This document shows, piece after piece, positions 10,901-54,900 of a stretch of 64,000 nucleotides of DNA (position 1 is its first letter; each line of letters begins with the position of its first letter). Origin of the DNA: Vitrella brassicaformis CCMP3155 (taxonomy: Eukaryota > Protista > Chromerida); assembly GCA_001179505.1 (NCBI GenBank), contig CDMY01000374.1:1-64000 (forward strand). Reading direction: 5' to 3'. Both the position numbers and the translations under genes were made by a program. The notes under the pieces were generated by a model that made no database searches, was not told the DNA's origin, and worked only from the letters and a program-made list of their open reading frames with translations.

Positions 10901-11154
10901 CTCTCTCTCTCTCTCCCTGTGTCTATGTGTGTGTCAAAAGGCTCGAGTGGGGCGGCGGTGCTCTGTTGGATATAAAAAACAACGAGGTGAGCGAACACAG
11001 ACATTTACATAATCGATGGGTCGAGTGGTGTGCTCATCTCATCTCATCACATCAGGGCAAAACGCCGTGGGACATGGCGGTGGACAAGCCAGAGATCAGA
11101 AAGATCATGAAGAAGTACATGCCTTTGTGTGGGCCTTGCTGTGTGATCATGTGA
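4983..11154 (+). pseudogene. G1: tandem TKL-like kinase + kinase + ankyrin repeats + CaaX, with nonsense codons in both kinases
   Basis: Spliced model: [48 protein letters not shown]. It continues in frame through EPVLVPPASVSRLLIRARNL into a second kinase, then a Pro-rich linker, about 8 ankyrin units and ..KKYMPLCGPCCVIM*. In-frame TAG at 5322-5324 and 6981-6983 and TAA at 6198-6200. Confidence 0.85.
9215..11126. other. 806-bp apparently identical duplication flanking a 300-N gap (10021-10320); probable scaffolding artefact
   Basis: 9215-10020 matches 10321-11126 (offset 1106), each abutting the N run. Confidence 0.8.
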
Positions 11155-11400
11155 GTCAGAGTCTGTCAGTTGCTCGGGTGTGCATCGAATAAGAAGCTAA
11201 GAGGCATTTCGAGTGGGTGATCTGACAGTGAGACGTGACCGATCATGTGTCGTCGTAAATGACACGGCGAATGGCAGTCCTCGGGTTCTTTCTTGTGTCT
11301 TCGTGTGGACCACTGCGAGGGGCTGTGAGGTGCTGTGTTTTTGCCAATGAGACATCAAGACTTGATTGGAAATGTCCATCAACACGTGAGCATACAGCCC

Positions 11401-11658
11401 TCAGTTCTTTCTGCATTGATGCTGCCCTGATTGCTGGTCAGCTGCTCGCGAAGGCTGCGATTCTCCTCTTGCGAAGCGCCAAACGTCTGTATCAGTGACA
11501 TAAGGAGACACACACCTCACGCCGATTAGCAGCCTTTGTCGTTGGCACACACACCTGTTGGTTGACAGTCTGTCTGGTCCTCTCCTTGTCGAGGCAGCTC
11601 TCGACCACCGACTTTCCAACGCAGCCGCCTGCAACTCACGTTAAAGACGCAATATCGC
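11401..11658 (-). pseudogene. Orphan copy of the last two exons of the coiled-coil gene (cf. 45325-45581)
   Basis: Same exons (AIL.LxRELQAAALE..CLDKERTRQTVNQQ / TFGASQEENRSLREQLTSNQGSINAERN*) without the upstream gene. Confidence 0.85.
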
Positions 11659-12224
11659 CTGACAAACGCCCCCTTCCTCCCTCCCTCCCGATTCATGCAC
11701 ATCTGACCCCTTACGTCTGTTGGGCGGGTTGATTAACTTGATCGAATTCAGCTCTCCCTGACAAGTACGTGCACGTACGTATGCCTGCGTTGTTTTTTCG
11801 GGGTTTTCGCGTGTTTAGTTCCAGGCACCAGCACATACCAAAGCAAACACGTGGCTGGCAAGGCAAGCGCACAGCCGGATGTGTCCCACTCTGGCTCTCT
11901 GTGTGTGTGGTCTGTATGTTGTCGTGGATGTACTCCATGTTTGTTCAGCCGTGAGATGCGACGCAGCATCGAGTGCATCGACGGGGACGCACAGACCACA
12001 CAACACCAGGAGCGAGCAGCACTACACACACACAAAGCACTGTACGGTCGGGTTATGTGTGTGTGTGTTTGTGTTCGCCTCGACGTGAGAACGGATATGG
12101 CAATTTAATTGCGTGTGCGTGTGCGTGTTGGGGGATTTATTCATACCATGCATTTCGTTTGCTTTTATGTGTTCGTGTTCGTGTGTGTGTGTGATGTGTA
12201 TATACCGATGTGTGTGTGTTTCTG

Positions 12225-13108
12225 TGTGTTATGTATTTATCTCACCGTTGTGTGCCTATCCATCTGTATGTGTACGTAGGTATGTATGTATTTAACCTGT
12301 GTACGTACCAACCAGCACCCCCTCACAGACGAACGTCTTTTTGCTACCACTACCCCCGCGTGGCCACCCTGACCGCTTTTTGCCACACACATGCCTTGTC
12401 TAACTTGCGTAACAATACATACACACATGCAGACGCGCTGGTTCTGTTACCCATCTGGTTTTGCCACTCATGCCTTCCCTCCCTGCTCACATGGTCAACA
12501 TCACGAATGTCTTACAGGGAAGCGCGGTGCAGTTAAGCAAGAGACACGCATGAGACAGACAGACAACCGAACAACATGCACTCTCTGGCAGTACGGCTCA
12601 TCGGTTCGATCATTGTGAGTTTTTCGGTGTTGAGATGGATGGACAACGAGATGAGTTTCGGTGGCTGACAAGTATAGCACACACCAACAGAAGTGGTGAT
12701 TGACTAATGTGGGCGCTGCTACTCGGTCCACAAGTAGCTGTGTACTGCTGCTTTTACGGTCAGAAATGAGCGTGTGCAATGGGAACTCTTTTCGCGGTTG
12801 CGTGCGTGCTGATTGATCGCATCACCATGCAGTGACATTCCTCCATCGCATCGAGTGGAATTCATCCACACAGACGCATGCCGGGTGACATGTGGGGTGT
12901 GTGTATGTAATAGTATGTAACAAGGACCGTCCTCAGTCACTTGAGATACGAAAAGCGAGTGAGCACCCACACGTGGACCAAAATGTGTCTGTGTCTGTGG
13001 ATAGCGCTCGTGATCTGCCGTGCTTGGCCAGTGGTCGAGAACCCTGGGGGCATTGGGGGCCGAACGGACAGCGGGGCTGCCAGTGACGAGTGCGTAAGTT
13101 CGCCCCTC
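12225..13108. repeat. ~0.9-kb upstream flank of G3, inverted copy of ~50152-51003
   Basis: Shared sequence such as atgtatttat..gtgtgcctatccatctg..gtaccaaccagcaccc..cagacgaacgtcttttt.. through to the ATG context of both kinase genes. Confidence 0.85.
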
Positions 13109-16100
13109 ATGGCTTCCCCCGTCCCTCGCCTGTTGATCAGGGCGAGGGACCTGACTGTGGGTGACAAGAAGCTTGGTGCGCTCACGACCAACTGCTGGCC
13201 CGATGTCATCGATTGGGTGACCTCTGTGTACCTCTGCATGTGTGTCTGTGTCAGGGGTTGGAGCATTCGGTATAGTGTACCAGGGCAAGTGGAATGGTCT
13301 GGACGTGGCTGTAAAGATCACAAAGATGGAGAAATTGAGGGAGGCCTCCCCACTTACCGGGGAGGAGCTTACCGACAGCGTGAGCATCGCAGGGCGTGTC
13401 AAATCATGTGGCACACAGGCATCATGTGATGCAGGAGCTGATGGCTGGGGCGATGGAGGATGTTCTGTCCGAGGCTCAGGAGATGCTTTACCTGCGACAC
13501 CCCAACATAGTGCAGTTCCTCGGTGTCTGCACGGACGCCAAGCACGGCCTCATGATCGTCTCAGGTCACCTCGGTTCATTCATCTGCTTCCTGACTGTGT
13601 GTCGCGTGTCCACAATTCTCAGAGTTGTGTAAGGGCGGATCGCTGGACAAATATTTGGCCAAGAACAGACCACTGCCGCCCGACGTGCGAGACAGATTCG
13701 TGAGAGAGGTACAGCACAGCAGACAGCGTCACATCTAGATTTGTGTGTCGATTGCCGTCAGATATGTGAGGGGGTGCAGTATCTGCACGACCACGACATC
13801 GTGCATCGAGCCTTGAAGCCGGGCAATATTCTCGTAAGGGCAGACAACCTTCACCTCTCGGTCGATGGCTGCAGCATCTTGTTGTGTCTCGTGTCTGTCA
13901 GTTGGGTGAGCGTCTGGTGATCAAGATAAGTGACTTCGGCATGACGCGGAATGTTCAAGTGACGTTGAGCTCTTCTGCAGGTAGCAAGAGACATGGGATG
14001 GCGGAATGCGGTGAGCGAGGTGCGTCTGTGTGTGTTGGTGCATCCGTCCCTGGACTGCAGGCGGCATTAAGGGAACCCCCAATTGAATGTCGCCTGAATC
14101 ATTGGATCCAGACAACTGTGAGTGCAAGAAAAGACGGTCGCCTTGGGAACTTGAATCATCGCCGGTGTGTGCAGTGGGGAAGCCCTCTATGGAGGCGGAC
14201 ATATGGGCGGTTGGATGCATTATCGCGCAGCTGTTTGGCGGTCAGCAGATGCACTTTCAGTCAGAGACAGTAGCCTTCACTTGTAATGTTCAGGCGGGCC
14301 TCCCTTTGAGGGCCAAGCACCTCTCATCATCATCACCGCCGTTGTCGTCCGAAAGCAGGTGACCTGCCACGTTGACACATGTTCACAGATCCTCTGAAGT
14401 TCTCTTTCTGCCTACTTCTGTCAGACCCCCCGCATCCCCGATTCCCTGCCTGAGCACATCAAGAGTGCCATCAAGGTAAACCGAGAGCCCTTCTCGTGTG
14501 CTGCATTTCCCTTCCGATTGTGACGGTGATCAGAGTTGTTTTGCCTTCAAGCCGGAAGATCGCCCCACAGCCAAAGAGGTACCTGACACGCACCACTGGA
14601 CAAACGCGTCGGCATGTCGTATCTGCTTGCCTGACTGTGGTAGTTGTTGGCCAAGCTGGGCATTCCGGCGAGTCCGTCAAAGGGCGCAGGTCCACTGACG
14701 CTCCACTTTGACACGAGAAAGCCCCCATTTGACTGCTTGACTGTGTGCAGACCCGGTGTTGGTTCCCCCTTCCCCTGTGTCTCCCGTTGACGTGCCTTCC
14801 GCTGGCGCTCCACCGAGTGTTCACACGAGCATGGCCAGCACAGTGCCGGGGCCGCCGAGTACGGTCCATCCAGCACAGGTCGGACTTGTGGTTGCGGAAG
14901 AGCAGACAGGTCGGTGTGGAAGGCACGAAGACAACACATGGAGAGACATACGACTGGTTATCCATGGTTTGTGTGTTGCAGCGCCCCCAGCCCAGCAGCC
15001 GTCAGTGAAGACACCGCCGAGCACCCCACAGCCGCAGATCAAACACGTAAGGGACACAGCAGCTGAACCCCACATGTCAACTGGCCGCTTTTCTCTGCTG
15101 GATGTGTGGCAGGCTGACCTTTTCAGGGCCGCCGTGTTTGGCGATGAGCAGTCGGTTCATTTGCTCATCGAGCGAGAGGGCAAGGATATACTCGACAAAC
15201 GAGACGAGCTCATCTTCAAGGCATGCAATCGTGACGACGAGAGAAATACACTCAGTGGTCTGTCTGTGTGGTCTCGTTCTCGCACGCAGTTGACACCCTT
15301 CCTTTGGGCTGCCAACAAGGGTCACGTGGGCGTCATGTCGGTCATGTATGAGAGCAAACCTGACGTACTGCAGCAAACAGAACAGGTACCGACCGACGTA
15401 GACAAACCACCCTGTGTGCGGCTGGTGATGATGAGGAGATGTGTGTTGAGTGTGATGGAATGCAGTTTGGTAACACCGTCATGCACTTAGCTGTCAACAG
15501 GGGCCATGTCGCGATGGTCAATAAGTTGCTGGAGTGGGATCCCAAACTGATCGACGCACGCACCCCGGTAACAGAGCACACACATGTCTCTCAAGCCTCT
15601 TCATGCCGATTGTGTGTGTGTGTGTGTGTGTTGATTGCAGTCTGGCGAGACGCCATTTATGGAGGCTGCCAGAGATGGTCATGTCGATGTGTTGGAGGCC
15701 CTGTATGACAAACGAAAGGACCTGGTCACACAGAAAAACATCGTGAGACACAGAATGCCTCCCGCCTCATCTGATTGATTGCCTTTCTTTGTGTGCATGA
15801 CACACACAGCTCGGCGAGACGGCGCTGCATGAGGCTGCAGGCCATGATGAAATTGAAGTGATGAAGTTTCTGTACGAGATGAACGGGTCCATCCTGCAGC
15901 AAACAGGCCGGGTACCAACCTAAGCATCTTCTGTGCTGCTGGTCATGGTGAGAAGATGTGTGTTGGCTGTGATGGAATGCAGAATGGTAACACTGCCCTG
16001 CACTCGGCTTGCTGGGGTGGCCATCTTGTGGCCGTCAATAAGCTGCTGGCGTGGGATCCCAAACTGATCGATGCACGCGACAAGGTAACAGAGCACACAC

Positions 16101-16676
16101 ATGTCTCTGACACCTCAGCGTGTCGATTGTGTGTGTGTTTTGATTGCAGAAGGGCAGGACGCCATTCATGCAGGCTGCCATAGGTGGTAACGTTGCTGTG
16201 TTGAAGGTTCTGTATGCCAAACGAGGAACAAAGCTACTCACAGAGATGGACAACGTGAGACAACACAGTCTTCTCTCACTGCTTGATTGCCTTTCACTGT
16301 GTGCATGACACACAAAGGACGGAAAAACGGCACTCCATTTGGCTGCAATCTGTGGCAACTCTGCGGCTGTGTCTCAGCTGTGAGCGACACACATGAATGA
16401 CTGACGCGAATGTCTCATCCCCACTCTCTCTCTCTCTCTCTGTGTGTGTGTCATTCTCAAAGGCTCAAGTGGGGCGGCGGTGCGCTGTTGGACATCAAAA
16501 ACAACTATGTGAGTGCACACAGACATTCACACCATCGATGGGCTGAGTGGTGTGCTCATCTCATCTCATGACAACAGGGGGAGACGCCCTGGGACAATGC
16601 AGAGGACGAGCCAGAGACCAGAAAGATCATGGAGAAGTACAAGCGCGCGTGTGGGCCTTGCTGTGTGATCATGTGA
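13109..16676 (+). pseudogene. G3: TKL-like (pseudo)kinase + ankyrin repeats + CaaX
   Basis: Same exon structure as G1 with a single kinase. The catalytic loop is HRALKPGN (GCC at 13810-13812). TGA at 14084-14086 replaces the Tyr of GTPNYMSPE. About 9 open ankyrin units follow, ending ..KYKRACGPCCVIM*. Confidence 0.88.
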
Positions 16677-16922
16677 GTCAACGTCTGTCAGTCGCTCGGG
16701 TGTGCATCGAATAAGAAGCTATGAGGCACTGTGAGTGGGTGATCTGACAGTGAGACCTGACCGATCATGTGTCGTCGTAAATGACACGGCGAATGGCAGT
16801 CCTCGGGTTCTTTCTTGTGTCTTCGTGTGGACCACTGCGGGGGGCTGTGAGGTGTTGTGTGTTTGCCAATGAGACATCAAGACTTGATTGGAAATGTCCA
16901 TCAACACGTGAGCATGCAGCCC

Positions 16923-17350
16923 TCAGTTTCTCTCTGCATTGATGCTGCCCTGCTGGCTGGTCAGCTGCTCACAGAGGCTGCGATTCTCCTCTTGCGAAGC
17001 GCCGAACGTCTGTATCAGTGACACAAGGAGACACACACCTCACGCCGATTAGCAGCCTTTGTCGTTGGCACACACACACCTGTTGGTTGACAGTCTGTCT
17101 GGCCCTCTCCTTGTCAGGCAGCTCTCGAGCCGCCGATTCTCCGGGGCATGAGTACTCACACCCGTCCGCAGTCACATGACACACAAGAAGACGAGCTGAC
17201 GGTCCCCACACGTGGACTAAAATGCCTCAGATGCAATTAACCACAGAGAGAAATCTGTATGTGCGCATCTGCCACTCAGTGATGCGTTCCGTCAGGCAGG
17301 CACTGAGTCGGGTGGCCTCCTCCCTTCCAAAGGCTTCTCTTCGGTGCGTA
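16923..17350 (-). pseudogene. Coiled-coil gene 3' fragment plus adjacent exon-like block, inverted copy of ~51150-51750
   Basis: ENRRLESC.DKERARQTVNQQ / TFGASQEENRSL.EQLTSQQGSINAERN*. The block gaggaggcca.ccgactcagtgcc..acggaacgcatcactga also occurs at ~51190-51230. Confidence 0.75.
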
Positions 17351-18246
17351 CGCGTGTTGATCAATCGTCGCATCACGAGTGTGTGTCTGTCATGGCGCAT
17401 GGCATCGATCGTCGTGCTCCGTACACACACACACACACACACACACACATGCACAGCCACATGAATGCAGGTAGCGGCCATGTCAGCTGGACACACTAGG
17501 GAACGAGCGCATAGGCAAGCAAGGGACAGGAGATGCACAGTGGAGAGCAGTCAGTCAGTCACGCTCAGCAACACATGCGTAGAACACATATGAGATGAAG
17601 AAAACAACAAACATGACCGTTTGTGTGTATGTCCACGGCCAAGAAACCGACGAGAGGAGAAAAATCATATCATCAATCAATATGAATGGGCTGAGCAGCG
17701 AATCGATCAAGAAAGAATGGCCGGAGGTGACTGCATGCCGAAACACCCTCCCTTCCGTATACACAGACAAACACCAACACGCACACACACACACATACAC
17801 ACATGTACACACACACAGACTGATACAATACATACATACATGCATACATACGTAGATACATGTACAGGATACATATGGAATCGATAGCAATAGAGGGAGC
17901 ATTGACCATGCAGCCGCCAGCCCACCGCCCCAGTCAGTCAGACAGTGACACGCTGCCGCTATTCAAGCGGCGTCAAAAATCAGACACACAGACAGGCAGA
18001 TAGACAGCAATACCCCAACCGACCCACAAAGGCCCCCACCACGTTGCCCGTCTCCTCTACGCACCGACCGATCGACCAATGCCGTCGCAACTCGCAACAC
18101 CCCCCAGCTCACGCCAGCCTACTGGTGTCACTCGCTACTCGTTGCGTCCATATCATCTCACCCACTCCAAAACTCACTCACCGACTGACTGACTTCATTT
18201 TCAGGGATGGGCGAAACGCAAGGAGACACCATACGCATCACATCGA

Positions 18247-20709
18247 TCACACTGTCCAGAAGGCAACCACATCTCTCCTCTCTCGTTGTGTAGGCTGGTC
18301 TGAAGACGATGGGGACGTTGCTGCTGCTGCTGGTGTTAATGGAGGGGCGGGAAGGGCGAAAGGTGATGTCAGCCATCTTAACGCCCACACGGCTGACGCA
18401 ACGGCCTGGTCGATGCATCAAAAGCCGCTCGTGTGTGTGTGTGCGCCTCGGTGATGGGTGGTTTCCTCCTTACGAATATGCGAATGAGTCGTAGTCTCGA
18501 TCTCAGTCGGGCGAAGCCGCCCCGCATTCGACGACGAAAATTCAAGATTGCACGCGGATACTGACATTGAGACACACACACACAGACACAGGACAACGTC
18601 TACGGACCGCATTGATGTCCGCCAGTCTGTTCACGGCACCTGTATGTTTCTTAGCTTGGCCATGGAAGCCTCCCAGCTCCACTGCTCGGCCTCCCTCCTG
18701 GCGGCCTCGCCCATACGCCGCCGCAGCGCATCGTCAGACAGCAGCTCACGCACCCTGTCGACGTACTGCTGGACGTCATCGCTTTGGACGAGGAATCCCG
18801 TCTCGCCGTGCCGGATGAGGTTGGGGATGCCGCCTGCACGGGCGCCGATCACCGGCACACCGCTGGCCATCGACTCTAGGACCACAAAACCTGAAAGAAG
18901 GAAGCATACACAGGTGGCAGGGGCGTGAGTGCAGACGCTTGTGTGGTGTGTATGTGTGTCTTACCGAGTGTTTCGGATTCGGATGGCATGACAAATATGT
19001 CCCCGGAGGCGAACGCCTCACTCAACGCCTCCCCTACACACATACAACAGCTTCCATGCCTTCATACCGTCTGTATGTCGGTCTTCCTCTTTCTGTCGCG
19101 AACCGGTCATGAATCCCGTGAAGACAGTCTTGGTGCCGTTGAAGTACTCCCTGAGCTCATCCTCACACGGCCCCGCACCCACAAACGCCAGCCTGGCCTC
19201 CGGCACCCTCTCAAGCACATCCCGCAGCAGGTGCAGGTTCTTCTCGGCACCCAGGCGGCCGATGTACACCAGCAGGGGGTCGTCTGGGTGGCCGTCTGAG
19301 AGCCGACTGCGCATGGCCGCTGACCTCTTGGTCGGATTGAAGGTCTGACAAGAACACACACAATGAGGGAGGGAGGGAGGGCCGAGTTTGTGTGTTGAGG
19401 AGAGAGGTGGGAGGTCACCTCAGTGTCGATTCCTTTTTGCCAGACGTCGACCTTCTGTATGCCGTGGCTCTCGAGCTCACTCTTGATCTGCGGACTGGTC
19501 ACCAGAGTGAGGTCAGCCAGGTTGTGGAACAGACGCAGTGCCAGCCATGACAGCCACACAATGCCTACACACACACACGGGCACACACAGGGGTAGTGTA
19601 CACAGACGTGTGGATGCACTCATTGACTGACCTGGGAGCCATCCGAGGTACTTGGCTGCGTATACGGGTAGGTGTGTGTGATAGCTCATGACCAAAGGGA
19701 TCTTCAGAAGACGCGCATACAGACACGCCGTCATCGCCAAGAAACCGGGAGTGCTCACCTGCACACACACAACACCCACACAGTCACATCCGTATGTGTG
19801 TGTGTCTGTGTGCCATGATGTGCTCATTACGTGCAGCAGGTCGGGTTTGAGTCGTTTGAGGACCCGCAGTCCCTTGAAGTCGGGGAAGTCTGTCGACAGC
19901 GCCAGGCTCTTGTAGAACGGCAGCCGGAAACTCCACGTGTTGTGAATCCGAAAGCCATAGGCCTGAGCCATCAATGGGCCATTCAGCCACACACAGCCAC
20001 ACATACACATGCCCATTCGCCCCTCTGTGTGCGTGTGTGCACACTCACACCCTCCCGCACCTCTTTTGGCGGGTTAGTGCTGTCGTCTGGCGTGACGATC
20101 TCGACGGTGTCCTTTTGCCGCCTGCAGTGCTTGAGCAGCTCCTTGAACCGATTCGCATACCCACTGATGTACGTGAACGGCGTCGGCTCCACCAGCAACG
20201 CTATCTGATCGACACACACCAAGACACAACACACGCATCCATCCGTCCATCCAGCCCACATGTCAGTCACGTGTCCACCGATGCGATGCCATACGTACCT
20301 TCTTGGGCGGCGCGATGGTGATGGTGTCCGGGGAGAGGACATCTCTCGGTGTCGGGCTGCTGACGGGCAGCACGCTGCTGTCCAGCAACGCATCGGTGCT
20401 GTCCAAGATCTCTTCCGCAGAGGGAGCTGACGCACCGGTGCCCAATGTCGTCGTTGAGGAGACTTCAGGAAACTGACACACGCAAGATCACCACACACAC
20501 GCACGCACGCATTGAGACGATCTGTCAAGCGCATGGCTGGGCATGTGGCTGCGTACCAGGCCATCGGGAGCAGCCCTCCGCGCACTCTGTTGCCGCATCC
20601 ATCTGCTCGCCAGGCGGGGAGCCGGCCGGATGAAAGATGTGTGCCGCCTCGGTGCACAAAACACAACGGGGAGGCATATGAAGGCGAGCAGACGCCATCT
20701 CAGCACCAT
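18247..20709 (-). CDS. SQD2: Sulfoquinovosyldiacylglycerol synthase (GT4 glycosyltransferase), plastid-targeted
   Basis: Spliced exons give IALLVEPTPFTYISGYANRF, LVMSYHTHLPVY, ADLTLVTSPQ, WQKGIDTE, LVYIGRLGAEKNL, FVMPSESETLGFVVLESMASGVPVIGARAGGIP, matching plant SQD2 motifs. The N-terminus MVLRWRLLAFICLPVVFCA-PRRHTSF.. looks like a signal peptide plus transit peptide. The 3' end is approximate. Confidence 0.92.
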
Positions 20710-20851
20710 CCTTTGCCCTTCTCTGTGTCAAGTCAAAGCTCGCAAGCGATCGGTCTGCGAGCTTGGCGCTTGGAGAGAGAGGGAAAAAGCAGAAGGGCGA
20801 CAGCATGCACAAATGGGGAGATCACCAGAGGGAGATACGATTCAATGAATC

Positions 20852-28614: not shown

Positions 28615-28900
28615 CTATCCCTTGTACTTCTCCATGATCTTTCTGATCTCCGACTCTCTTGCCCCCCTGTCCCATGGGGTCTTCCCCTGTTGTCATGAGA
28701 TGAGATGAGCACACCACTCAGCCCATCGATGGTGTGAATGTCTGTGGGCACTCACCCTGTTGTTTTTGATGTCCAGCAGCGCACCGCCGCCCCACTCGAG
28801 CCTTTGAGAATGACACAGACAGAGAGAGAGTGGGGATGAGATGTTCGCGGCAGTCATTCATTTGTGTCGCTCACAGCTGAGACACAGCTGCGGATTTGTC
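28615..28900 (-). pseudogene. Truncated 3' end of a kinase-ankyrin paralog (last three exons)
   Basis: ..AAVSQL / LEWGGGALLDIKNNR / GKTPWDRGARESEIRKIMEKYKG*; no upstream ankyrin or kinase exons. Confidence 0.8.
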
Positions 28901-29215: not shown

Positions 29216-29617
29216 GATGGCGGTGGGTGTCGTCTGTCTGCGGGGTTTATGTGAGGCAGTGCAGGCACGGTCCAGACAGACACAGACTCGGCCATCGGAC
29301 AGCTGCCACTCTCACACACTCAAACACACAAGTCAGACAGACAGACAGACAGGCAGGCACTTCGCGCGCAATCAGACACACACCCTGACGAAACGAACAC
29401 CGAAGCAGACACCTGCACGTCAAGTGGAACCGACACAGACACCAGATAGACAGAGAGACACACCGCACACATCAGGTCATAGCACACTTATCTCCCCGCT
29501 GCCCTTTGATCTCTCTGCACCGCAACACAAAAGTGGCAGCTGCTGTCTGTCAGACAAACCCACCCAGCTGGACAGACGAAAGGCCTCACACACTTCACAC
29601 ACATCAGACCAGAAAGT

Positions 29618-32478
29618 CTATCGCTTGTACTTCTTCATGATCTCTCTCATCTCCGACTCGCTCCACGGCGCATTGTCCCACGGCGTCTTCCCCTGTTTGT
29701 GATGAGATGAGATGAGCACACCACTCAGCCCATCGATGGTGTGAATGTCTGTGGGCACTCACGTCCTTTCGTTTGATGTCCAGCAGCGCACCGCCGCCCC
29801 ACTCGAGCCTTTGAGAATGACAGAGAGAGAGAGAGAGAGAGTGGGGATGAGATGTTCGCGTCAGTCAGTCATCTGTGTCGCTCACAGCTGAGACACAGCC
29901 GCAGAGTTGCCACAGATTGCAGCCAAATGGAGTGCCGTCTCGCCGCGCTGTGTGTGTCATACACACAAAGGAAAGGCAGTCAATCAGATGAGAGAAGACT
30001 GTGTTGTCTCACGTCGTCCTTCTGTGTGAGTAGGTCCTTTCGTTTGGCATACAGGGCCTTCAACACATCGACATGACCACCATAGGCAGCCGATATGAAT
30101 GGCGTGTAGCCATTCTGCAATCCACACACACAGACACACAATCGGCACACTGATGCGTCAGAGACATGTGTGTGCTCTGTTACCTCGTCGCGTGCGTCGA
30201 TCAGTTTGGGATCCCACTCCATCAACTTATTGACAGCCGCAACATGGCCCTCCCGAGCAGCCCAGTGCAGGGCATTCCGACCAGACTGCATTCCATCACA
30301 GCCAACACACATCTCCTCATCACCAGCAGCACACAAGATGATTTGTCTGTGTCGGTACCTTGTTTGTTTGCTGCAGTACGTCAGGTTTGGTCTCATACAT
30401 AAGAGACATGACGCCCACATGACCATACAGTGCATCCTCCAGGAAGGGCGTGTCCTGCATGAATGAGAACACACAGACAGACCAATGAGTGCATTTCTGC
30501 CGTCTCCACGACTGCATACCCCCGCGTTGTCTCGTTTGTCGAGTATGTCCTTGCCATCTCGGGCGATGAACAAACGGACGGACTGCAAATCGCCGGCCTT
30601 GACGGCATCGAAGATGTCAGCCTGACACACAACCAGCACAAAAACAGCGGCCCATTGGCGTGTGGGATTCAGCTGCTGTCTCCCTGACGTGTTTGATCTG
30701 CGGCTGTGGGGCCGGAGCGGGTGCTGGCGTGGGACTGACTGCATCATCAAACAGACACACACGATTGCACTCATTGGTCGTCTTGTCCGTCCGGTGGCCC
30801 ACCGCGCGGGTCGGGTGTCACTGCCAGGACACACACCAATCATGATGCCCAAATCGTCGATTTGATGAGCATTTGGTGGTGTGGTGTGTGTCACCTGTCC
30901 GGCCTCTGTCGTTGAGTTTGTTCAAAAGCTGATATCATTATATGCGGCACGTCAGATGCACAGAGACGCACAAAGTTCAGACAACAGTCCTCTCATTGAC
31001 CTCGGCTGTGCAGACTGCGTCAGCTCACCTCATGGGCAGACGGCCGGCTCCGTGGGTTGAAGGCAAAACAACTCTGATGGACCACAAGAGACAGCTGCAT
31101 TCAGCATCGCACGTCAGATCTGACGTTACCTGTATGGCCTGTTTGACATTGACGGGGATCTTTGGAGGAATGGGCGGCGTCTGCACGACACACAGACACA
31201 GCGCAAATTTCAGGCGTCCGAAAGTCTGTACCTCTTTGTTTTCACAGATCGTCTGCTCAATCTGTCTCATACTCAGACCGGCAAAGGGACTGGACCCTGA
31301 CAAATATCACGTGACGATATGCCCTCTCAGAGAGCTGATTGTGTCTGTGGACTTCTCACCGCCGAATACTCCGCGATGATGCAGCCAACAGACCAGATGT
31401 CCGACCTGTCCGTCAGCTGGGGCCCTGACGTGCACAGAGAAGCGAATGGATGGCATCTCCTGCATGTGTGCGCTGACTGTCTGCGAATGCTTCAGGAGGC
31501 GCATAGACAACGGTCCCACCTGATTATCACACACAACGTACGGTCCTCAACCCGTATGCAGTGAAGTCAGTGACTCACCGAAGTGGCTGGAGCTGTGGTG
31601 TGTGCCCTGCAACTCTCTGGAGAGTCCGAAGTCGGATATTTTCACGTTTTGGTCATCATCCAGCTGGCGGACCCCCAGATGAGAAGAGACGTGCAAGGGA
31701 GACACATCGATCATGCGGTCTCATTCATCTGAACACTCCCTAACCAGAACATTTTCCGGTTTGATGTCTCGATGGATGCCGCCCTTGCTGTGTATGTAGG
31801 CCAGCCCCTCACACAGCTGAGATGCATGAGGGCAGCTGTCATGGCGATGTGTTTGTGTTACCGATGTGACCTAACCTGCCTGGCCAGCATGTATCTCTTG
31901 TTCTCGGGGAGGCCGCCCCTCCTTTGAAGTATGCTGAGACACTTCCGCAACGAGTCCACATAGAACTCTGCACAACAGACACCTGCACAAGACTGTCGCC
32001 AATGGTGCGGCCAGCCCTACCGAGGACAAGAAACGGGATTCTCTTGTCGTAGCAGACACCCAGGAGCTTGGCCACGTTGGGATGCTTCATACCTGCCACG
32101 AATTTGGCCTCGGCCTCGACCTCCTTTACGAGATTCTGATGACACAAAATCAGCGGCGTTGTTGCCATACAGAGGACCTGGTCGAGGCTGACTACACACG
32201 CACCTCCTTCCCCAAAGAATTGATGAGGTGTTTCTTCGGAATCTTGAGGGCAACAGTCTGGTCCCTCCACTGCCCCTTGTACACCTCAGCAAACGCACCG
32301 TCCCCTGACACGGACCCCACAACACGAGGCAGTGGATGCCACTGGATGGTTGGTTCGTACCGATGCAATCCACTTCATCGTCCCAGTAGAGCTCATGCAG
32401 TCGTATGGAGTCTATTTGGACAGAACCACGCCTCATCGGGGGAGGAGCGGGAAGGGGAGGGAACGCGCGAGCTTGCAT
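29618..32478 (-). pseudogene. Gene I: second-subtype TKL-like kinase + ankyrin repeats, no CaaX, probable frameshift
   Basis: [45 protein letters not shown]. The exon ending GAG TA TTC GGC G is 1 nt shorter than in gene K (~31365), which shifts the next exon into a stop. The ankyrin exons are open and end ..MKKYKR*. The start may instead be 32436. Confidence 0.8.
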
Positions 32479-36989: not shown

Positions 36990-39897
<2,908 letters not shown>

Positions 39898-40310
39898 GTT
39901 CTTCTGGTCAGACTCTGATGTGTGTGTGGAGTGTGTAAGGCCTTTCGTCTGTCCAGCTGGGTTTGCCTGACAGACAGCAGCTGCCACTTTTGTGTTGCGG
40001 TGCAGAGAGATCAAAGGGCAGCGCGGGAGATAAGTGTGCTATGACCTGATGTGTGCGGTGTGTCTTTCTGTCTGTGTGGTGTCTGTGTCGGTTCCAGTTG
40101 ACGTGCAGGGGTCTGCTTCGGTGTTCGCTGGGTTAGGCTGTGTGTGTCTGATTGCCCGGGGGTAAAGTGCCTGTCTGTCTGTCTGTCTGGCTTGCCGGTT
40201 TGACTGTGTGAGTGTGGCAGCTGTCCGATGGCCCTTTCTGTGTCTGTCTGGATCGTGCTGCACTGCATCACATAAACCCCGCAGACAGACGACACCCACC
40301 TCTATCCCCA

Positions 40311-40475
40311 GTCAGCAGCTTTGGTTGACCAAGAAGGGCGACAGTCAAGTGATTGTGTTCACGAGTGTGGCGGGCAGGACAGGCAAGTTTCGCTTGAGCA
40401 TCCACACACCTCCTGTCAAGAGCGACCGGAGACACCCACTCGTGAGGAGGGGGGCTAAGTGAAGTGATAAGTCTG
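40311..40475 (+). repeat. Second copy of the calpain terminal exon
   Basis: QLWLTKKGDSQVIVFTSVAGRTGKFRLSIHTPPVKSDRRHPLVRRGAK* (stop 40460-62). Confidence 0.9.
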
Positions 40476-40846
40476 TGGTGGGTGCTAGGCTGTTGGACAG
40501 GTAGGTGAGGCTCTTAAAAATCTGACATTGTGTCGTCTGTGTGCTTGATGGATGGAAGCAGCACAGACGCATCGTGTCCATGAAACAACACCGCAGAGTT
40601 TGAAGTGTCAGCTGCGCCGGTCTCGCATACAACGTACATCTTCGTCTACACAGACAAAGGTGTCTCCCCCGAGATGCAACGTTTGTTCTCTATGTGTCGC
40701 GTGCCTCTGATTGATCAGCGAGAGAACCGATGTCCACTCGTGTGCACAGGACTAGTGGAGAGAATTGTCGCGCGAAAAGCACTGCACTCTATCCTAGAAG
40801 GTCTCTTCTTCTCGTTCCTAACGGGTCCTTTCTTGTCGTTGACTAA

Positions 40847-43719: not shown

Positions 43720-43826
43720 CTGCATGCACTGGTGGGATGACGTAATGCGCATGATGCGCATGAAAAATCGGCAAATGAAATTTACAGCAGGACTGGTCTT
43801 TTGTTGGACCGACGAAAAACAACATC

Positions 43827-45581
43827 ATGAAGAAGGGTGTTGAAGTGGTGATGGGCGGCAAGTGGGGTGAGCTCCAGGCCGAGAACGCATCACTCGCCGC
43901 ACAAGTAGCTGACATGACGCGGAAAGTAGCCCAACTGGAGCAGCAACTGATGGTCAAATCCGACGTGCTGCAGGTGCACCCGATTGCATACATGGATGGA
44001 TGGATGGATCAAGCACCTCAAAGGAACGACCCCAAATGTATCGTGTAGAGGCTGGACGAGTCGGAGAGGATCACAAAGGAGAGCTACGAGGCGCTTCTGA
44101 GTGACCACAGGGACCTCACTTCCAACCATGCGCTGCTGGAGGGAGAGATGGAGGAAATGAAGATGGAGAAGGGCACTCTGCAGGTCAGGCAAGGAGTGAC
44201 AATGACCCACAATCTCAATCTCCATCACGCACACACTGAATGGTCATGCCTGTCTATCATTATGCAGCGTCGCGTTTCTGAGTTGGAGGGGGAGTGCGTG
44301 GACAAACAGGGGAAGATAGAGGTGCGCACAACTAATCGATGATCGCTGGGTGTAATTAGTAGTTGATTGTCTACCTGACTGCATGCAGGCGTATGAGAGT
44401 GAGATTGCCTCCCTGAGTGAGGCCGAAAGGCGACTGTCGAGCACACTGACGGAACATGTACCACGTGGCAAACTTGCAGACGGGGAGAGATGGTATCATG
44501 CCCCTCTCTCTCTGTGTGTGTGTGTGTGTGTGTGTGTGAGTGCAGGAATTGGCTTACCACAATCTCTACAACGACTACGCAAAACAGCTGGACTACACAG
44601 ACGTGAGCACACGTAGAGCACACAGAAAGTGGTCGGGTCATGTTATGTGGTGTCTGTGTCTCCTTTTGCGCGTCAGCGTCTGAGAACCAATATCGAGTCT
44701 CAGAAGCGTCTGCGTGACCAGAAGGACCGACACATTGCCACCATACTGAAAGAGAAAGACAAACTATACAGACAAGTGTACGCAGGGTGAAGAAAGATGC
44801 ACACGTAATTGTTGGTGCTCTTGTGGTCCTCATTCGTCAGCACGCAGACCCGCGTTCTCCTGTCCAACACGCGCAACTCTGCCCAGCGGGTGCAGAGGGC
44901 GGCGTACGACCATGCCGACGAGAACCACCCCAGGTGAGAAAAGGAGACAGATAACAGAACACCCGAGTGTGCCCCGTTTGCTGCCCTGTGCATGTCTCAT
45001 GTCAGTGCGATGTCTGCCCGCCGCCCCCCTTCTCGGCAGCACGTCTCATCTGTCAGGGCGGCCTCTGACGTACCACTGGCGTGCATGCGCCGATCGCCCT
45101 CATGCCCTGTGGTCAAGGAGAAGAAGAAGACGGAGGGGCCGCCTGGTGAGAAGAAGGGACAGAAGGCACGTGAGGCAGTGAAGAAGGCGGAGGCGTCCAA
45201 ACAGCAGGAGGGCAAAACCATCGAAGACGTAAGGGGCCAGATTATGCACGAATCGGGGAGGGTTTGTGTATATGTGTGTCTGTCCATGCGTGTGCGTGTG
45301 TGTGTGTGTGTGTTTTTTTTGGCAGGCGATATTGCGTCTCCAGCGTGAGTCGCAGGCGGCTGCCTTGGAGAATCGGCGGCTCAAGAGCTGCCTCGACAAG
45401 GAGAGGACCAGACAGACTGTCAACCAACAGGTGTGTATGCCAACAGAGGCTGCTGATCGGCGTAGGTGTGTGTCTCCTTATGTCACTGACGCAGACGTTT
45501 GGCGCTTTGCAAGAGGAGAATCGCAGCCTCCGTGAGCAGCTGACCAGCAATCAGGGCAGCATCAATGCAGAGAGAAAGTGA
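43827..45581 (+). CDS. Coiled-coil protein of unknown function
   Basis: Heptad-rich exons (ELQAENASLAAQVADMTRKVAQLEQQL; AILRLQRESQAAALENRRLKSCLDKER; EENRSLREQL..AERK*). Middle exons are uncertain. Confidence 0.65.
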
Positions 45582-45835
45582 GGGCTGCATGCTCACGTGT
45601 TGATGGACATCTCCAATCAAGTCTTGATGTCTCATGCATGGCAAGAACACAACATCTCACCCCCCTCGCAGTCGCTTACGCATATATCCATGCCCCCTCA
45701 CATGAAAACACGAGAAAGAAGCTGAGGGCTGCCATTTGTATTCGCCATGTCATTTGCGACGACACATGATCACCCACTCACAGTGCCTCCTGGCTTCTTA
45801 TTCGAAGCACACCCGAGCAACTGACAGACTCTGAC

Positions 45836-48800
45836 TCACATGATCATGCAGCAAGGCCCACAAGCAGGCTTGTACGGCCGCATGATCTCTCTGATCTCCG
45901 GCTTGTCGTTTGCCAATCCCCACGGGGTCTTCCCCTGTCGTCATGAAATGAGATGAGCACACCACTTAGCCCATCGATGGTGGGAATGTCTGTGGGCACT
46001 CACCCTGTTGTTTTCGATGTTCAGCAGCGCACCGCCGCCCCACTCGAGCCTTTGAGAAGGACACAGAGAGAGTGGATGAGACATTCGCGTTAGTCGGTCA
46101 TTTGTGTCGCTCACAGCTGAGACACAGCTGCGGATTTGCCACTGAGTACAGCCACATGGAGTGCCGTGTCTCCGTCCTGTGTGTGTCATGCACACAGGAA
46201 GAAGGCAATCAATCAGACAAGGGGCATTCTGTGTATCTCCGTTTGTGTCTCTTCACATTGTTTGTCTGTGTCAGCAGGTCCTTTCGTTTGGCATACAGGG
46301 CCGCCATCACATCGACATGACCACCCTCGGCAGCCATCATGAATGCCGCCACTCTGCAATCACCACACACACAATCGACACACTGAGGCGTCAGAGACAT
46401 GTGTGTGGTCTCTTACCTTGTCGCGTGCATCGATCAGTTTGGGATCCCACGCCAGCAGCTTATTGACCGCCGCAACATGGCCATTGGCGGCAGCGAAGTG
46501 CAAAGCGGTGTAGCCATCCTATTGCATTCCATCACACCCGACACACATCTCATTATCACCAGCAGCACACAAGATGGTTTGTCTGTGTGTGGGTACCTCG
46601 GTTATTTGCTGCAGTACGTCAGGTTTGCTCTCATGCATAAGAGACATCATGTCAGCGTGACCTAGCATGGTAGCTCGAATGAACGGTGTCCACTGCGCGC
46701 AGAAAGGATGAAAAGAGACCCCTCCATGAGTGCATCTCTTGCTCACCCCCTTTCCATTTCTGATGTCGAGAATCTCGCTGCCCATTTCTTCGACAAGCAA
46801 ACGAGCCCACTCCACGTCGCCGGCCACCACGGCGTCGAATATGGTCTGCACAGAATCAACACAAAGATGGCGGCCCATTGGCATGTGTGCAATTCAGTTG
46901 CTGTCTCCCTTACGTGTTTGACCTGCGGTGATGGCTGCTCCCGGGCAGGCGCCTCTGTAAAACACATCGCAACAGATAAATGAGAAGCTCCTCTGTGCAC
47001 GCGAAGCCCACCACACCTGCTTCCGTCAGCCATTTGACCCTGATGCCATCAGCCCATTCACCTCTCCTCGATATACCTGCCCGAGCGACATCCGCACACA
47101 ACCCCTTGAGCTGTATGTGTGTGTGTGTGTGCTTACCTGATGCAGTGGTATATGTCCCTTTTCCATGCTGCTTGCCGTCCTTCCACTCGCCCTGATATAC
47201 CAGACAGGACACATATGATGAAGTGGCTTAAGGGATTTGAGTCTCTCATGCACCTCGTAGCAGCGGCCGTCGGGCCACACGAATTTGCCCCATCCGTGTT
47301 TCTTGTCTCCGTGGTACGGGCCCTCGTAGTGGCGTCCGTCGGGCCACTCCATGAGACCCTCACCGTGCATTTTGTTGCCCTCCCACTGCATTCACAGCGG
47401 GCAGACCTTTGCGATGGTGTATGACACTGTATGTGTGTGTGCTGCGTATGACCTGTCCCCTGTAGAAGCGTCCTTCGGCCCATTTGTACGTCCCGGATCC
47501 TTGCAGGTTGTTGTGCACGAAGTGGCCCTCGTATGTGCTGCCATCGGGCCACGTGAACACGCCTTCTCCGTGCTTCATGCCGTCCTTGCAGTCAGAAAAT
47601 GCACTTCTGTGTCCGAATGGTCGATTGTTATTAGTTGTGTATACGCACGTGTAGTATCCTTTGTATGCCGATCCGTCAGCCCATGTCTCGACGCCATAGC
47701 CAGTCTGCTTGTCGTCTGCCCAATCGCCCTCGTACCTGCAGCATTCACGACCAGCCCTGCCTGCATATGTCTTCGTCTCGTCCCTCGGGCACCTGGATCC
47801 GTCAGCATGTGTCAATTTGCCTTTGCCATGTCTCCTGTTGTCCTTCCATTCGCCCTCGTACACATCACCATTGATTTTTATGCATTTTCCGTGCCCCTGC
47901 ATCAATGCATTGAGTGGATACTCGTCAGACCCCTTCCTTTGTCAGCAGCTCACGTGATATCTATTGGTCTTGAATTGTCCTTCGTATTTGCCCTCATCTG
48001 CTTTTTCCAGTATACCGTAGCCATCGAAGGTATTACCAACCCACTCGCCCTCGTACTGCGCGCCTCCTGCAACAACAGGAGTCAGCCAGCTGACAAACTG
48101 CCAAATCGTCCTCATGGTGTCTCCACGCACCTTTGAGTCTCACCATAGACCGCCTTTTCCTTGCCTGTGGGAAAGAGAGCTGTCCTGGCCACACTTGGTG
48201 CATCGATTCGTTCGTGTGTACCTGGCTGGTGTTTTGTTGTTTGGTGGGGGCTGGTGTGGGAGTGACTGCAGTCAACGGATCATCTATAGTGTATCCTTGT
48301 GTGTATAGATGCCTCACACAGACACGCGCAGCCGACCTGTTTGCTCTTCCGCAACCGCAAGCTTGATCTGTGCGGGAGAGACCGAACTCGACGGCCCCGG
48401 CACTGTGCTGGCCATGCTCACGTGAATACCCGATGAAACGCCGGCAGGAGGCACGTCAACGGGAGACACAGGGAGAGAGGGGGCCAACACCGCTTCTGCA
48501 CGCAGCCAGAAAAACATCGGCCAATGAAGGCTTTTACCTGTGGCAAGAGCGCAAAGCAGTGGAAGTGTATTTTCTGACGAACCAGATGGAGAGTCCAGCA
48601 TGGCCAACACCTAGCGAGCAGTCAGGCAAGCAGATAGTCGACATGCGCACGCCTTCGCCCAAAAGTCCATGTGAGGTACCTCTTTGGCTGTGGGGCGATC
48701 TTTTGGATTGAAGGCGAAACAACTCTGAGCAGCAATCACAATCGGAAGGGAAATGCAGCACGAGAAAGGTTTTCGGCTTACCTTGATGGCACCCTTGATG

Positions 48801-51424: not shown

Positions 51425-51748
51425 GGCAGGAGGGCAAGACCATCGAAGCTGTGAGGAAGGGTGTGTGTGTGTGTGATTGTTTGTCAGGCGATATTGCGTC
51501 TTCAGCGTGAGTTGCAGGCGGCAGCGTTGGAGAATCGGCGGCTCAAGAGCTGCCTCGACAAGGAGAGGGCCAGACAGACTCTCAACCAACAGGTGTGTGT
51601 GTGCCAAGGACAAAGGCTGCTGATCGGCGTGAGTGTGTGTCTCCTTATGTCACTGATGCAGACGTTTGGCGCTTTGCAAGAGGAGAATCGCAGCCTCCGC
51701 GAGCAGCTTACCAGCCGGCAGGGCAGCATCAATACAGAGAGAAACTGA
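51425..51748 (+). pseudogene. Orphan copy of the coiled-coil gene 3' exons
   Basis: QEGKTIEA / AILRLQRELQAAALENRRLKSCLDKERARQTLNQQ / TFGALQEENRSLREQLTSRQGSINTERN*. Confidence 0.85.
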
Positions 51749-51979
51749 GCGCTGCGTGCTCACGTATTGATGGACATTTCCAATCAGGTCATGATGTCCC
51801 ATGGCAAACACACAACACCTCACAGCCCCTCGCAGTGGTCCAGATGGAGACACAAGAAAGAAACCGAGGGCTGCACTTCGTATATTCGCCGTGTCATTCG
51901 CGACGACACATGATCACCCACTCACAATGTCTCCTAGCTTCTTATTCGAAGCACACCCGAGCGACTGACAGACTGTGAC

Positions 51980-54900
51980 TCACATGATCATCCAGCAAGG
52001 CCCAGAAGCAGGCTTGTACGGCCGCATGATCTTTCTGATCTCCGGCCTGTTTGCCGCCCAGAACCATGGCGTCAGTCCCTGTTGTGATGAGATGAGCTGA
52101 GCAAACCACTCAGCCCATCGATGGTGGGAATATCGGTGTGCACTTACCTTGTTGTTTGTGATGTCCAGCAGAGCACCGCCCCCCCACTCGAGCCTTTGAG
52201 AAGGACACACACACAGAGAGAGAGAGAGAGAGTGGATGAGATGTTCGCATCAGTCAGTCATCTGTGTCGCCCACAGCTGAAACACAGCGGCAGATTTGCC
52301 CCAGAGTACAGCCCCATGGAGTGCCGTGTCGCCCTCCTGTGTGTGTCATGCACACAGAGGAAAGGCAATCAATCAGTGAGAGAAGATTGTGTTGTCTCAC
52401 CTTGTCGGTCTGTGTGAGAAGGTTCTTTCGTTTGGCATACAGGGCCTTCAACACATCGACATGACCATTCCCGGCAGCATAGATGAATGGCGTGGCGCCC
52501 TCCTGCAATCAACACACGTACACACACAATCGAGACACTGAAGCGTCAAAGACATGTGTATGCTCTCCTAGATTGTCGCGTGCATCGATCAGTTTGGGAT
52601 CCCACTCCATCAGCTTATTGACAGCCGCGACATGGCCCTCGTAGACAGCCTTGTGCAGGGCAGTGTCACCACGCTGCATTGCGTCACACCCAATACACTC
52701 TTTATCACCATCAGCAGTACAAGATGGTTTGTCTGTGTCGGTACCTTGGTCTCTGTTTGCTGCAGTACGTCAGGTTTGCTCGCATACATGACCGACATAA
52801 CGCCCACCTCACCCTTCTGTGCAGCCTTGAGGAAGGGCGTGAACTGTGCGCAGGAATGAGAAGACACAGACCACTGAGTGCATTTCGATCGTCTTCACGA
52901 TTCCATACCTCGAAATTGTATTTGTCTCGTTCCCGTTTGTCGAGTATGTCCTTGCCATCCCTCTCGATGAGCAAACGAACTGACAGAGACCATGACCGAT
53001 GGATGGTTCGATGGATTCTTCACTTATATGTTTGAGTGTCTCGCGATGTCTCTGTTTACCCATCCCATCCCATGTTACCGGACTGCTCATCGGCGGCCTT
53101 GACGGCTTCGAAGATGTCAGTCTGACAGACAATCAGCACAAGAACAGCGGCCCATTGACGTGTGGGGTTTAGTTGCTGTTTCCCTTACGTGTTTGATCTG
53201 CGGCTGTGGAGGGCTCGGCGATGTCTTCACTGACGGCTGCTGGACGGGGAACGCTGCACGACACACATGACACATGAAACGATTCAATACATGTGCGTGC
53301 CTTCCACAGCTGACCTGTTTGCTCTTGCGGAACCACAAGTTTGATCTGTGCTGGCGAGACCGCACTCGGTGGCCCCGTTATGGTGCTGGCCATGCTCGCA
53401 TGGACACCCGCTGTATGGCCAATGGGAGACACGACAGCGGGAGAAACAGAGGGAGGGAGAACCGACAACACCTCTGCACGTAGTCAAGCAGTCTAAATTA
53501 GGCGACGGGGGCTGGCCCAAGGCGTTTAACCGGCAATTGACCTGTATCTTTCGACGGACTCGCCGGAATACCCAGCTTGGCCAACAACTACCAAGCGGTC
53601 AGGGAAGTAGACACTCGACATGCACACGCCTTTGTCCAATGTCTATATCAGGCACCTCTTTGGCTGTGGGGCGATCTTTTGGATTAAAGGCAAAACAACT
53701 CTGAACAGCAACCACGATCAGAAGGGAAACGCGGCAAACAGGAAAGGGCCCTCGGCTTGTCTTGATGGCACTTTTGATGTGCTCAGGCAGGGAATCGGGG
53801 ATGCGGGGAATCTGACATGCGTGTGCAAAAAAAGACTTCCAGAGAATCTGTCAACACGTGTCAACGTGGCAGGTCACCTGCTTTCGGACCACAACGGCCA
53901 TCATGATATTTACGGCACTTCAGCCTCCGAAAGGAGGCCCACCTGAACATCACAGATATAGGCTGCAAGTGTGTCCGAGTGAAGGTTGCATCTGCTGACC
54001 GCCACACAGCTCCGCAATGATGCATCCAACCGCCCATATGTCCGCCTCCATAGAGGGCTTCCCACTGCACACACCGGCAGTCATTCAAGTTCTCAAGCCC
54101 ACCGGCTTTTGTTGCACTTACAGTTGTCTGGATCCAAAGCTTCAGGTGACATGTAATTGACGGTTCCCTTAATGCCACCTGCGGTGCGGTGACGGATGCA
54201 ACAAGCACAGACGCACCTCACTCGCCGCCTTCCGCCATGCCATGTCTCTTGCTACCTGCAGAAGAGCTCGACGTCACTTGAACATTCCGCGTCATGCCGA
54301 AGTCAGATATCTTGATCACCAAATACTCAGCCAACTGACAGACACGAGACACAACAAGAGGCTATGGCCACCGACCGAGAGGTGAAGGTTGTCTGCCCTC
54401 ACGAGAATATTGCCCGGTTTCAGGTCTCGATGCAGGATTCCGTGGTCGTGAAGATACTGCACGCCCTCACATATCTAACGGCAATCGACACACAGATTGA
54501 GATGAGTCACCTGATGGCTCTGACGCTCGTATGCTTTGCTGTACCTCTCTCACGAATCTGTCTCGCACGTCGGGCGGCGGGGGTCCGTTCTTAGCGAGGT
54601 AGGACGCTAGAGAGCCGCCCTCACACAACTCTGAAAATGACAAGCAGACATCACGAGACAGCCTGGCTGGACAAAGCGAAGTGTATGACCACCTGTGACG
54701 ATCATGAGTCCGTGTTTCTTGTCTGCGCAAACACCTAACAGCCGCACGATGTTGGGATGCCGCAGTGAAAGCATCGGCTCAGCCTCGATCAGAGCGTCCT
54801 CCATCGCTCCAGCCATCAGCTCCTATGCACATGCCACAACAAGGCATGCGATAAACAATGCACGAGCGGCGACATCTCACACCCTCACGTCGTCATCGAC

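Follow-up and report, generated by a model that had tools for sequence, protein, structure and literature searches.

Two alternative C-terminal endings, with and without a putative CaaX farnesylation box, in a kinase-ankyrin gene family of Vitrella brassicaformis

The kinase-ankyrin genes and their terminal exons

The stretch of DNA analysed in this work comprises positions 1 to 64,000 of contig CDMY01000374.1 of the chromerid Vitrella brassicaformis CCMP3155; it is referred to here as the window, and corresponds to C374:1-64000 in the genome that was searched (72.7 Mb, 1064 contigs). It harbors a tandem and inverted array of genes sharing one architecture, some of which end with a CaaX box, i.e., a putative farnesylation signal, that is lacking in the others. 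This architecture consists, in order, of exons matching PK_Tyr_Ser-Thr/Pkinase, a Pro/Ser-rich linker, ankyrin repeats (about one per exon), and a short terminal exon. The kinase and the ankyrin repeats belong to one gene, as revealed by the Pfam matches (PK_Tyr_Ser-Thr/Pkinase and Ank) located on successive exons of gene G3, and the same order is found in the annotated proteins P0001 and P0004. The annotated proteins of V. brassicaformis CCMP3155 match the predictions in the window exactly, G3 corresponding to CEM06973.1 (P0004) and P to CEM06991.1. The array includes gene G1 (6784-11154, + strand), gene G3 (13109-16676, +; TKL-type kinase exons, linker, ankyrin repeats and tail exon, delimited by Pfam and by tblastn of P0004), gene I (32305-29618, -), gene K (about 37130-39897, +), gene O (50151-45836, -), gene P (55144-51980, -), and a fragment made up of the last two exons only, ending at 28615 (-). 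Judging from their sequences, these genes form a tandemly amplified, Vitrella-only family that combines a TKL-type kinase with ankyrin repeats. When a profile of 11 tail exons was searched against 1.84 billion representative proteins, no relative of the tail was found outside Vitrella, the matches being members of the Vitrella family and two generic ankyrin proteins without the tail; an exact-pattern scan of Joint Genome Institute (JGI) metagenome contigs for the tail DNA gave no match, a result that is uninformative on absence.

The last exon encodes half an ankyrin repeat, of the form G-x-T-P-W-D ... E-I-R-x-I-M-x-K-Y-K. In the CaaX class, nine codons follow the KYK end and read A-C-G-P-C-C-(V/M)-I-M-stop, while the tail-less copies stop nine codons sooner. 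Each terminal exon is preceded by an AG acceptor, and the penultimate exon ends in a phase-0 GTGAGT donor. The terminal exon of G1 (11056-11154, +) ends with KKYMPLCGPCCVIM (...LCGPCCVIM; CVIM codons at 11140-11151, TGA at 11152-11154), that of G3 (16578-16676, +) with KYKRACGPCCVIM (...ACGPCCVIM; TGA at 16674-16676), which is also the end of CEM06973.1, and that of O (45836-45934, -) with KPACGPCCMIM and TGA, its last base being 45836. The terminal exon of P (51980-52098, -) ends with ASGPCWMIM and a stop at 51980-51982; here, the CCA at 51992-51994 corresponds to a TGG codon in the coding orientation, so that Trp replaces the CaaX Cys (SGPCWMIM). No CaaX box is encoded by the terminal exons of I (29618-29692, -; KKYKR, TAG) and K (39823-39897, +; EKYKR, TAG), and that of the 28.6-kb fragment (28615-28686, -) ends with EKYKG and TAG. 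The coordinates and translations that an initial annotation had assigned to these seven tails all hold, including the loss of the Cys at -4 in P through the TGG codon. The same annotation had considered P as lacking the signal: the -4 Cys is indeed lost, but P is not simply tail-less, since it keeps a Cys at -5 (CWMIM). The acceptor of P lies about 20 nt upstream of the one usual in the family (52079-52098, -) and adds LISSQQ before the terminal half-repeat; this upstream acceptor is supported both by the annotation and by an independent transcript contig.

A degenerate form of the tail pattern matches the window four times against an expectation of 0.17, and the whole genome eight times against none for the reversed control. 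A chance origin of the pattern is thus excluded; the four tails of the window are paralogous copies, not independent events.

The tails as C-termini of transcribed genes

Three short JGI contigs, L057, L058, and L059 (L057 and L059 from samples 3300017148 and 3300017297), are devoid of introns and hence are transcript assemblies. L058 matches the C170 gene of the family at 100%, in blocks the size of exons, and extends from the predicted acceptor past the CMIM-TGA codons to include 226 nt of unspliced untranslated region (UTR). Positions 1549-1932 of L059 are 100% identical to gene P, with 52193-52148 joined to 52098-51759, so that the contig spans the last intron of P and its CWMIM stop and extends 221 nt into the UTR. 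Positions 1347-1445 of L057 are 100% identical to 45905-45807 in O, through CCMIM-TGA and 29 nt of UTR, and in this contig the last intron has been removed at the predicted sites. L059 corresponds to the C429 gene as far as the penultimate exon and to gene P of the window from there on; since L057 and L059 are chimeras, the protein models derived from them are untrustworthy as isoforms. Contigs of a further run, X1, cover 11144-11265 in G1, with no mismatch and no splice, and the end of G3, where a contig starts exactly at the exon boundary 16578, runs to 16679, and continues with letters located elsewhere; such letters beyond the boundary are expected of a spliced molecule. The tail-less endings are likewise present in transcript-derived proteins (P0024, P0010, and P0007). 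Runs X3-X5 are DNA-like, with an even cover of intergenic sequence and no clean intron joints, and provide no expression evidence.

The TGA of the CaaX class is embedded in ATGTGAGTC (11149-11157 and 16671-16679, +; 45833-45841 and 51977-51985, -), a perfect match to the GTGAGT donor of the family that is kept in 10 of the 11 CaaX copies. The four transcript contigs crossing the stop all continue unspliced for 29-226 nt, the overlapping GTGAGT being unused. Rather than a different last exon or stop, the contigs confirm the acceptor, the TGA, and the unspliced 3'UTR: the tails are the true C-termini of transcribed genes.

Genome-wide copies and selection on the CaaX box

The last two exons and the intron between them occur in about 40 genomic copies, whose terminal exons were all translated. 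Twelve copies are of the CaaX type; ten of these are intact (seven ending with CCVIM, two with CCMIM, and one with CRSRCMIM) and two are broken, namely P (Cys to Trp) and the C297 copy, in which the stop is gone and the motif is buried. About 18 copies are of the KYK(R/G/Q)-stop type, and in the remaining ones the exon is either extended or internal and spliced to a further ankyrin module. The C297 copy (L045, G000:C297:about 18150-18450, -) is CEM00697.1, the twelfth of the CaaX type, and reads NCGPCCMMM followed by FRIKDHFR and a stop; this member is a decayed one.

The exon of the C170 gene that is homologous to the tail exon occupies an internal position (L030 1623-1790, i.e., G000:C170:124290-124457; L058 818-910). 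A cDNA identical to the genome uses a GTAAGG donor right after KKYKQP and joins it to a second ankyrin module ending with CRSRCMIM; if unspliced, this internal exon would end with KKYKQPVRE and a stop. Tandem tail exons, 1-1.7 kb apart on the same strand, are found at several loci. The two-way division of the tails drawn in the initial annotation was therefore incomplete, a third fate having been missed, in which the same exon is internal and spliced to another ankyrin module.

In order to assess the constraint acting on the tail, 11 CaaX-type copies were aligned, and the proportions of synonymous (pS) and nonsynonymous (pN) differences were calculated with the Nei-Gojobori method over the nine copies of equal length. 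The last 30 coding nucleotides are the most conserved, with a mean pairwise identity of 87% versus 71% in the rest of the exon and 66% in the UTR. In the CaaX codons, pS is 0.53 and pN is 0.074 (ratio 0.14), while the ratio in the 23 preceding codons is 0.66. Nearly all the differences found in the box are either silent or conservative: TGT and TGC are the codons used for Cys, ATC, ATA, and ATT those used for Ile, and either Val or Met occupies the position before Ile; the final Met and the TGA are invariant in all the 11 aligned copies. The divergent C433 copy, whose exon is 62% identical and whose UTR is 31% identical, with intron and UTR essentially unalignable, yet keeps ACGPCCMIM-TGA intact. 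The CaaX codons are under purifying selection, and the interpretation of CVIM and CMIM as canonical CaaX boxes, advanced in the initial annotation, is borne out.

The 3' cassettes and the evolution of the two endings

The sequences of the CaaX and KYKR classes separate immediately after AAGCG, and each class has its own conserved 3' block. In the CaaX class, this cassette is a 3'UTR block of ~465 bp, located at 16677-17142 (+) in G3, with copies at 11155-11611 (+), 51529-51973 (-), and 45361-45829 (-); it shows 87-97% identity and a common distal boundary in nine CaaX copies genome-wide. The tail-less cassette, located at 39898-40484 (+) downstream of K, also occurs in I (29603-29036) and in copies from other parts of the genome, and its conserved block extends up to about 570 bp. 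A GGCCTT flanked by TGTG, shared by the two types of sequence, had raised the suspicion that the tail-less 3'UTR might be a decayed CaaX tail, which turned out to be unsupported. When the CaaX and tail-less 3' sequences were locally aligned and compared with dinucleotide shuffles, p ranged from 0.15 to 0.79 in eight of the nine pairs, the sole exception being C433 versus C429 (p = 0.018). At the sequence level, the two 3' blocks are not detectably related, and the division into CaaX and non-CaaX classes with unrelated 3' sequence extends genome-wide.

It had also been proposed that each class co-occurs with a given flanking gene, a coiled-coil one in the case of the CaaX tails. The co-occurrence with a flank stands, in that the CaaX tail travels with the ~465-bp block, but the coiled-coil flank was not identified: no coiled-coil open reading frame was found in the flank shared by the CaaX copies, and it was not looked for further. 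The co-occurrence is a by-product of duplications in which each class was copied along with some 0.5 kb of 3' sequence. The tail-less 3'UTRs, including those at 39935-39965 (K) and 29560-29590 (I, -) and copies genome-wide, share the motif GTGTGTAAGGCCTT(T/G)..GTCTGTCCAG, which holds the palindrome AAGGCCTT and is kept even between otherwise divergent UTR subtypes.

The 800 nt preceding the terminal exon were used to build a maximum-likelihood tree. Since it is weakly resolved, it does not settle the direction and the number of tail gains and losses; nevertheless, the approximately unbiased test is against the monophyly of the CaaX class (p = 0.02, with or without the long-branch rows). A single origin of the class was considered and rejected: the tail classes are scattered over the tree, on which the CaaX label needs seven changes, a number no better than that for shuffled labels (7.6-8.6). 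Gene conversion in the ankyrin exons could give the same scatter, and for this reason the result is read only as mosaic evolution, in which the 3' cassette and the gene body would not share one common history. This suggests that the 3' cassettes might have been shuffled or lost repeatedly among paralogs. The two endings appear, from these comparisons, to be distributed among the paralogs independently of the upstream sequence, rather than being isoforms of one gene.

The signal had initially been described as switchable. The CaaX pattern occurs in the window only at the four tails listed above, and none is present downstream of I or K; no gene of the window has both endings, and the transcript contigs show one ending per gene and no alternative splicing. 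The difference is fixed between paralogs, and a Cdc42-like regulated switch within one gene is not supported.

The tail as a probable substrate for lipid modification

An AlphaFold model was obtained for the C-terminal 217 residues of the paralog CEL96958.1, using a family alignment of 15 sequences. The model, whose mean predicted local distance difference test (pLDDT) score is 93.5, is a regular ankyrin stack with the last helix ending at residue 204, i.e., 13 residues before the C-terminus; KYNPACGPCCVIM protrudes as a coil, and residues 211-217 have a pLDDT <50. The tail is thus predicted to be a disordered, exposed extension past the last ankyrin cap. It is known that prenyltransferase substrates characteristically carry an exposed flexible tail.

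As for the enzymes, repeats of the prenyltransferase alpha-subunit (PPTA) were found at two genomic loci, and three loci for beta-subunits have as best matches the beta-subunits of farnesyltransferase (FTase; C255), geranylgeranyltransferase I (GGTase-I; C376), and Rab geranylgeranyltransferase (RabGGTase; C581), these assignments of subunits resting on the best PDB matches of single exons. The genome also encodes ICMT, Rce1-like proteases, and DHHC acyltransferases (about 18 or more loci). Unlike P and the C297 copy, G1, G3, and O carry a Cys at exactly the fourth position from the C-terminus, with two mostly aliphatic residues after it. CVIM is the farnesylation box of K-Ras4B, and Met as the last residue (as well as Ser, Gln, Ala, or Cys) directs farnesylation rather than geranylgeranylation; this residue is Met in all the 11 aligned copies. 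Moreover, the Cys residues at -5 and -8 fall in the stretch of about 10 residues before the CaaX Cys in which dually lipidated tails have one or more Cys. Pentapeptide CaaaX substrates of the CMIIM type do exist, although the residue following the Cys is little tolerated by rat FTase (PMC11121372). By analogy, it is unlikely that P (CWMIM) is such a substrate, and a loss of the CaaX signal is probable in this gene.

On the basis of the sequence, farnesylation of the CaaX-class tails is likely, probably together with palmitoylation. FTase would farnesylate the Cys at -4 of the CaaX box (X = Met), the -IM/-VIM tripeptide would then be cleaved, and the new C-terminus methylated; one or two upstream Cys residues (-5 and -8) might undergo S-palmitoylation as a second membrane signal, on the model of the tails of the H-/N-Ras, RhoB, or paralemmin type. 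The CaaX-class paralogs would be located on the cytosolic face of membranes, and those ending with KYKR and a stop would have no anchor, so that the paralogs probably differ in membrane anchoring. Of the division into membrane-anchored and cytosolic proteins put forward in the initial annotation, the two tail classes are real; the lipid modification and the localisation are what we infer from the terminal sequences, the spliced C-termini, the selection, the modelled disorder of the tail, and the enzyme genes. Taken as a whole, we consider it fairly probable that the CaaX-class paralogs are lipid-anchored and the KYKR-stop ones unanchored, with endings that are fixed in each paralog and carried by different 3' cassettes.

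Some points weigh against this interpretation. The kind of the X1 run was guessed as RNA, and the transcript contigs assembled from short reads switch paralogs at shared exons upstream of the last two exons; being chimeric there, they establish the terminal exon and the stop rather than full-length isoforms. The ratio of 0.14 derives from pairs of non-independent paralogs and only four codons, and is given with no p-value. The palmitoylation part is the weaker one, as the Cys at -5 is present in 10 of the 11 copies (Arg in the C170 copy) and that at -8 in eight, being replaced by Ser in the other three. Finally, the rule linking a terminal Met to farnesylation is a general one and may not be that of the Vitrella enzyme.

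Other explanations can be envisaged. The CaaX box might be a neutral passenger, conserved because of the youth of the copies or because of gene conversion, and both the 87-97% identity of the 3' block in most CaaX copies and the signs of concerted or mosaic evolution in the family would fit with this; nonetheless, the CaaX codons are rich in synonymous and poor in replacement changes (0.14 vs 0.66), and the C433 and C170 copies keep the box despite the divergence of the exon, intron, and UTR that flank it, so that we regard such a neutral conservation as very unlikely. The cysteine cluster might instead work without prenylation, through palmitoylation only or as a redox or metal-binding CxxC, the VIM/MIM being incidental. 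CGPC is, letter for letter, identical to the active site of thioredoxin, C-G-P-C-C is found in 7 of the 11 copies, and DHHC enzymes are abundant in the genome. However, three copies that are expressed or intact have Ser instead of the first Cys of CGPC, the C170 copy (CRSRCMIM) has no CGPC at all, and the tail is predicted to be disordered, with no thioredoxin fold; above all, the top constraint falls on Cys -4, Ile -2, Met -1, and the stop, i.e., on the CaaX box itself, and a role without prenylation is, in our opinion, unlikely.

A true switch, in which splicing, in certain conditions or genes, from the donor embedded in the stop (AT|GTGAGT) to a downstream ankyrin module would allow one gene to yield a CaaX-ended protein as well as an extended one, would account for ATGTGAGTC being kept in 10 of 11 copies with the usual donor of the family, for the homologous C170 exon serving as an internal one, and for the tandem tail exons that several loci carry on the same strand at a distance of 1-1.7 kb. 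Yet all four contigs crossing the site are unspliced for 29-226 nt, no joint at this donor was reported among the run contigs, and neither a downstream CaaX nor an in-frame acceptor was identified; we therefore deem a splicing switch highly improbable. If the CaaX-class paralogs are lipid-anchored through endings fixed in each of them, a more speculative and rather doubtful possibility is that the lipid anchor behaves as a swappable module: recombination or gene conversion would move the 0.5-kb cassette (tail and UTR) and redeploy kinase-ankyrin combinations from membrane to cytosol and vice versa, possibly with the addition of a regulated use of the stop-overlapping donor.

Comparison with known systems

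The mechanism proposed is the ordinary, textbook CaaX lipidation, and it is the carrier family that is lineage-specific. The CaaX-class tails share with those of the Ras type the CVIM box of K-Ras4B and, as in dually lipidated tails, a Cys directly upstream of the CaaX Cys; moreover, as in H-/N-Ras, RhoB, and paralemmin, a flexible tail follows a folded domain. In contrast with the Ras-type proteins, the carrier in Vitrella is a kinase-ankyrin protein rather than a small GTPase, its tail has no polybasic stretch, and the modification is predicted. RIPK4 and ANKK1 resemble the Vitrella proteins in having ankyrin repeats after an N-terminal TKL-type kinase; to our knowledge, they carry no CaaX tail.

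In the CCaX tail of brain Cdc42, prenylation is coupled in tandem to the palmitoylation of the adjacent Cys (PMC9868626), and alternative terminal exons of this gene (CVLL versus CCIF) have different 3'UTRs and undergo different lipidation (PMC9868626; bioRxiv 10.1101/366369). Cdc42 is, however, one alternatively spliced gene, whereas each Vitrella paralog has one fixed ending. AnkB of Legionella pneumophila possesses an F-box and ankyrin repeats and is anchored to membranes by a farnesylated C-terminal CaaX, and in the homologues of other strains the motif has been lost via a C-terminal change (PMC2916131, PMC5506055). An ankyrin protein with a C-terminal CaaX that some homologues have lost recalls the Vitrella family, but AnkB is a bacterial effector using host enzymes, it has no kinase domain, and its tail is not homologous to that of Vitrella. 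LKB1/STK11 is a soluble kinase whose conserved C-terminal CaaX Cys is farnesylated, which promotes membrane association (PMC3898322). Such a Cys at the end of a kinase is also found in the Vitrella CaaX class; however, LKB1/STK11 belongs to another kinase family, has no ankyrins, and is encoded by only one gene, whereas the Vitrella family has many copies, some bearing the motif and others not.

No photosynthetic organisms are more closely related to apicomplexan parasites than the chromerids. The literature search retrieved neither a paper linking Vitrella to this kinase-ankyrin family or prenylated kinases nor a description of a set of prenylated proteins in chromerids. About a quarter of the family members bear a selected farnesylation box, and their annotation is well supported; these about ten genes, out of roughly 40 kinase-ankyrin ones, are testable candidates for membrane-proximal signalling kinases, and near-identical paralogs with and without the anchor represent a natural experiment. 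The value of the analysis thus lies in annotation and in the generation of hypotheses, not in a new mechanism.

Other features of the window

A kinase-only piece is located at 4983-6471. The segment at 10321-11126 (+), beyond a gap of 300 N (10021-10320), is an assembly duplicate of 9215-10020: since the 806-bp blocks flanking the gap are 100% identical (806/806 bases), the second tail exon of G1 (9836-10020) is a scaffolding duplicate, which also yields false extra ankyrin exons in this gene. G3 reads HRALKPGN at 13804-13833, where all the other copies in the window have HRDLKPGN; the change of the catalytic Asp to Ala is found in G3 alone, which may be a pseudokinase in spite of its intact CaaX tail. 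A 1.2-kb X1 contig matches the spacer between G1 and G3 (11722-12892) at about 97% identity; this spacer, found again between P and O (about 50.6-51.0 kb), may represent a non-coding RNA or a 5' region that is transcribed. Gene O contains, between the kinase and the ankyrins (46900-48340, -), a block of MORN-like repeats (YEGEW.. motifs) that is absent from the other copies.

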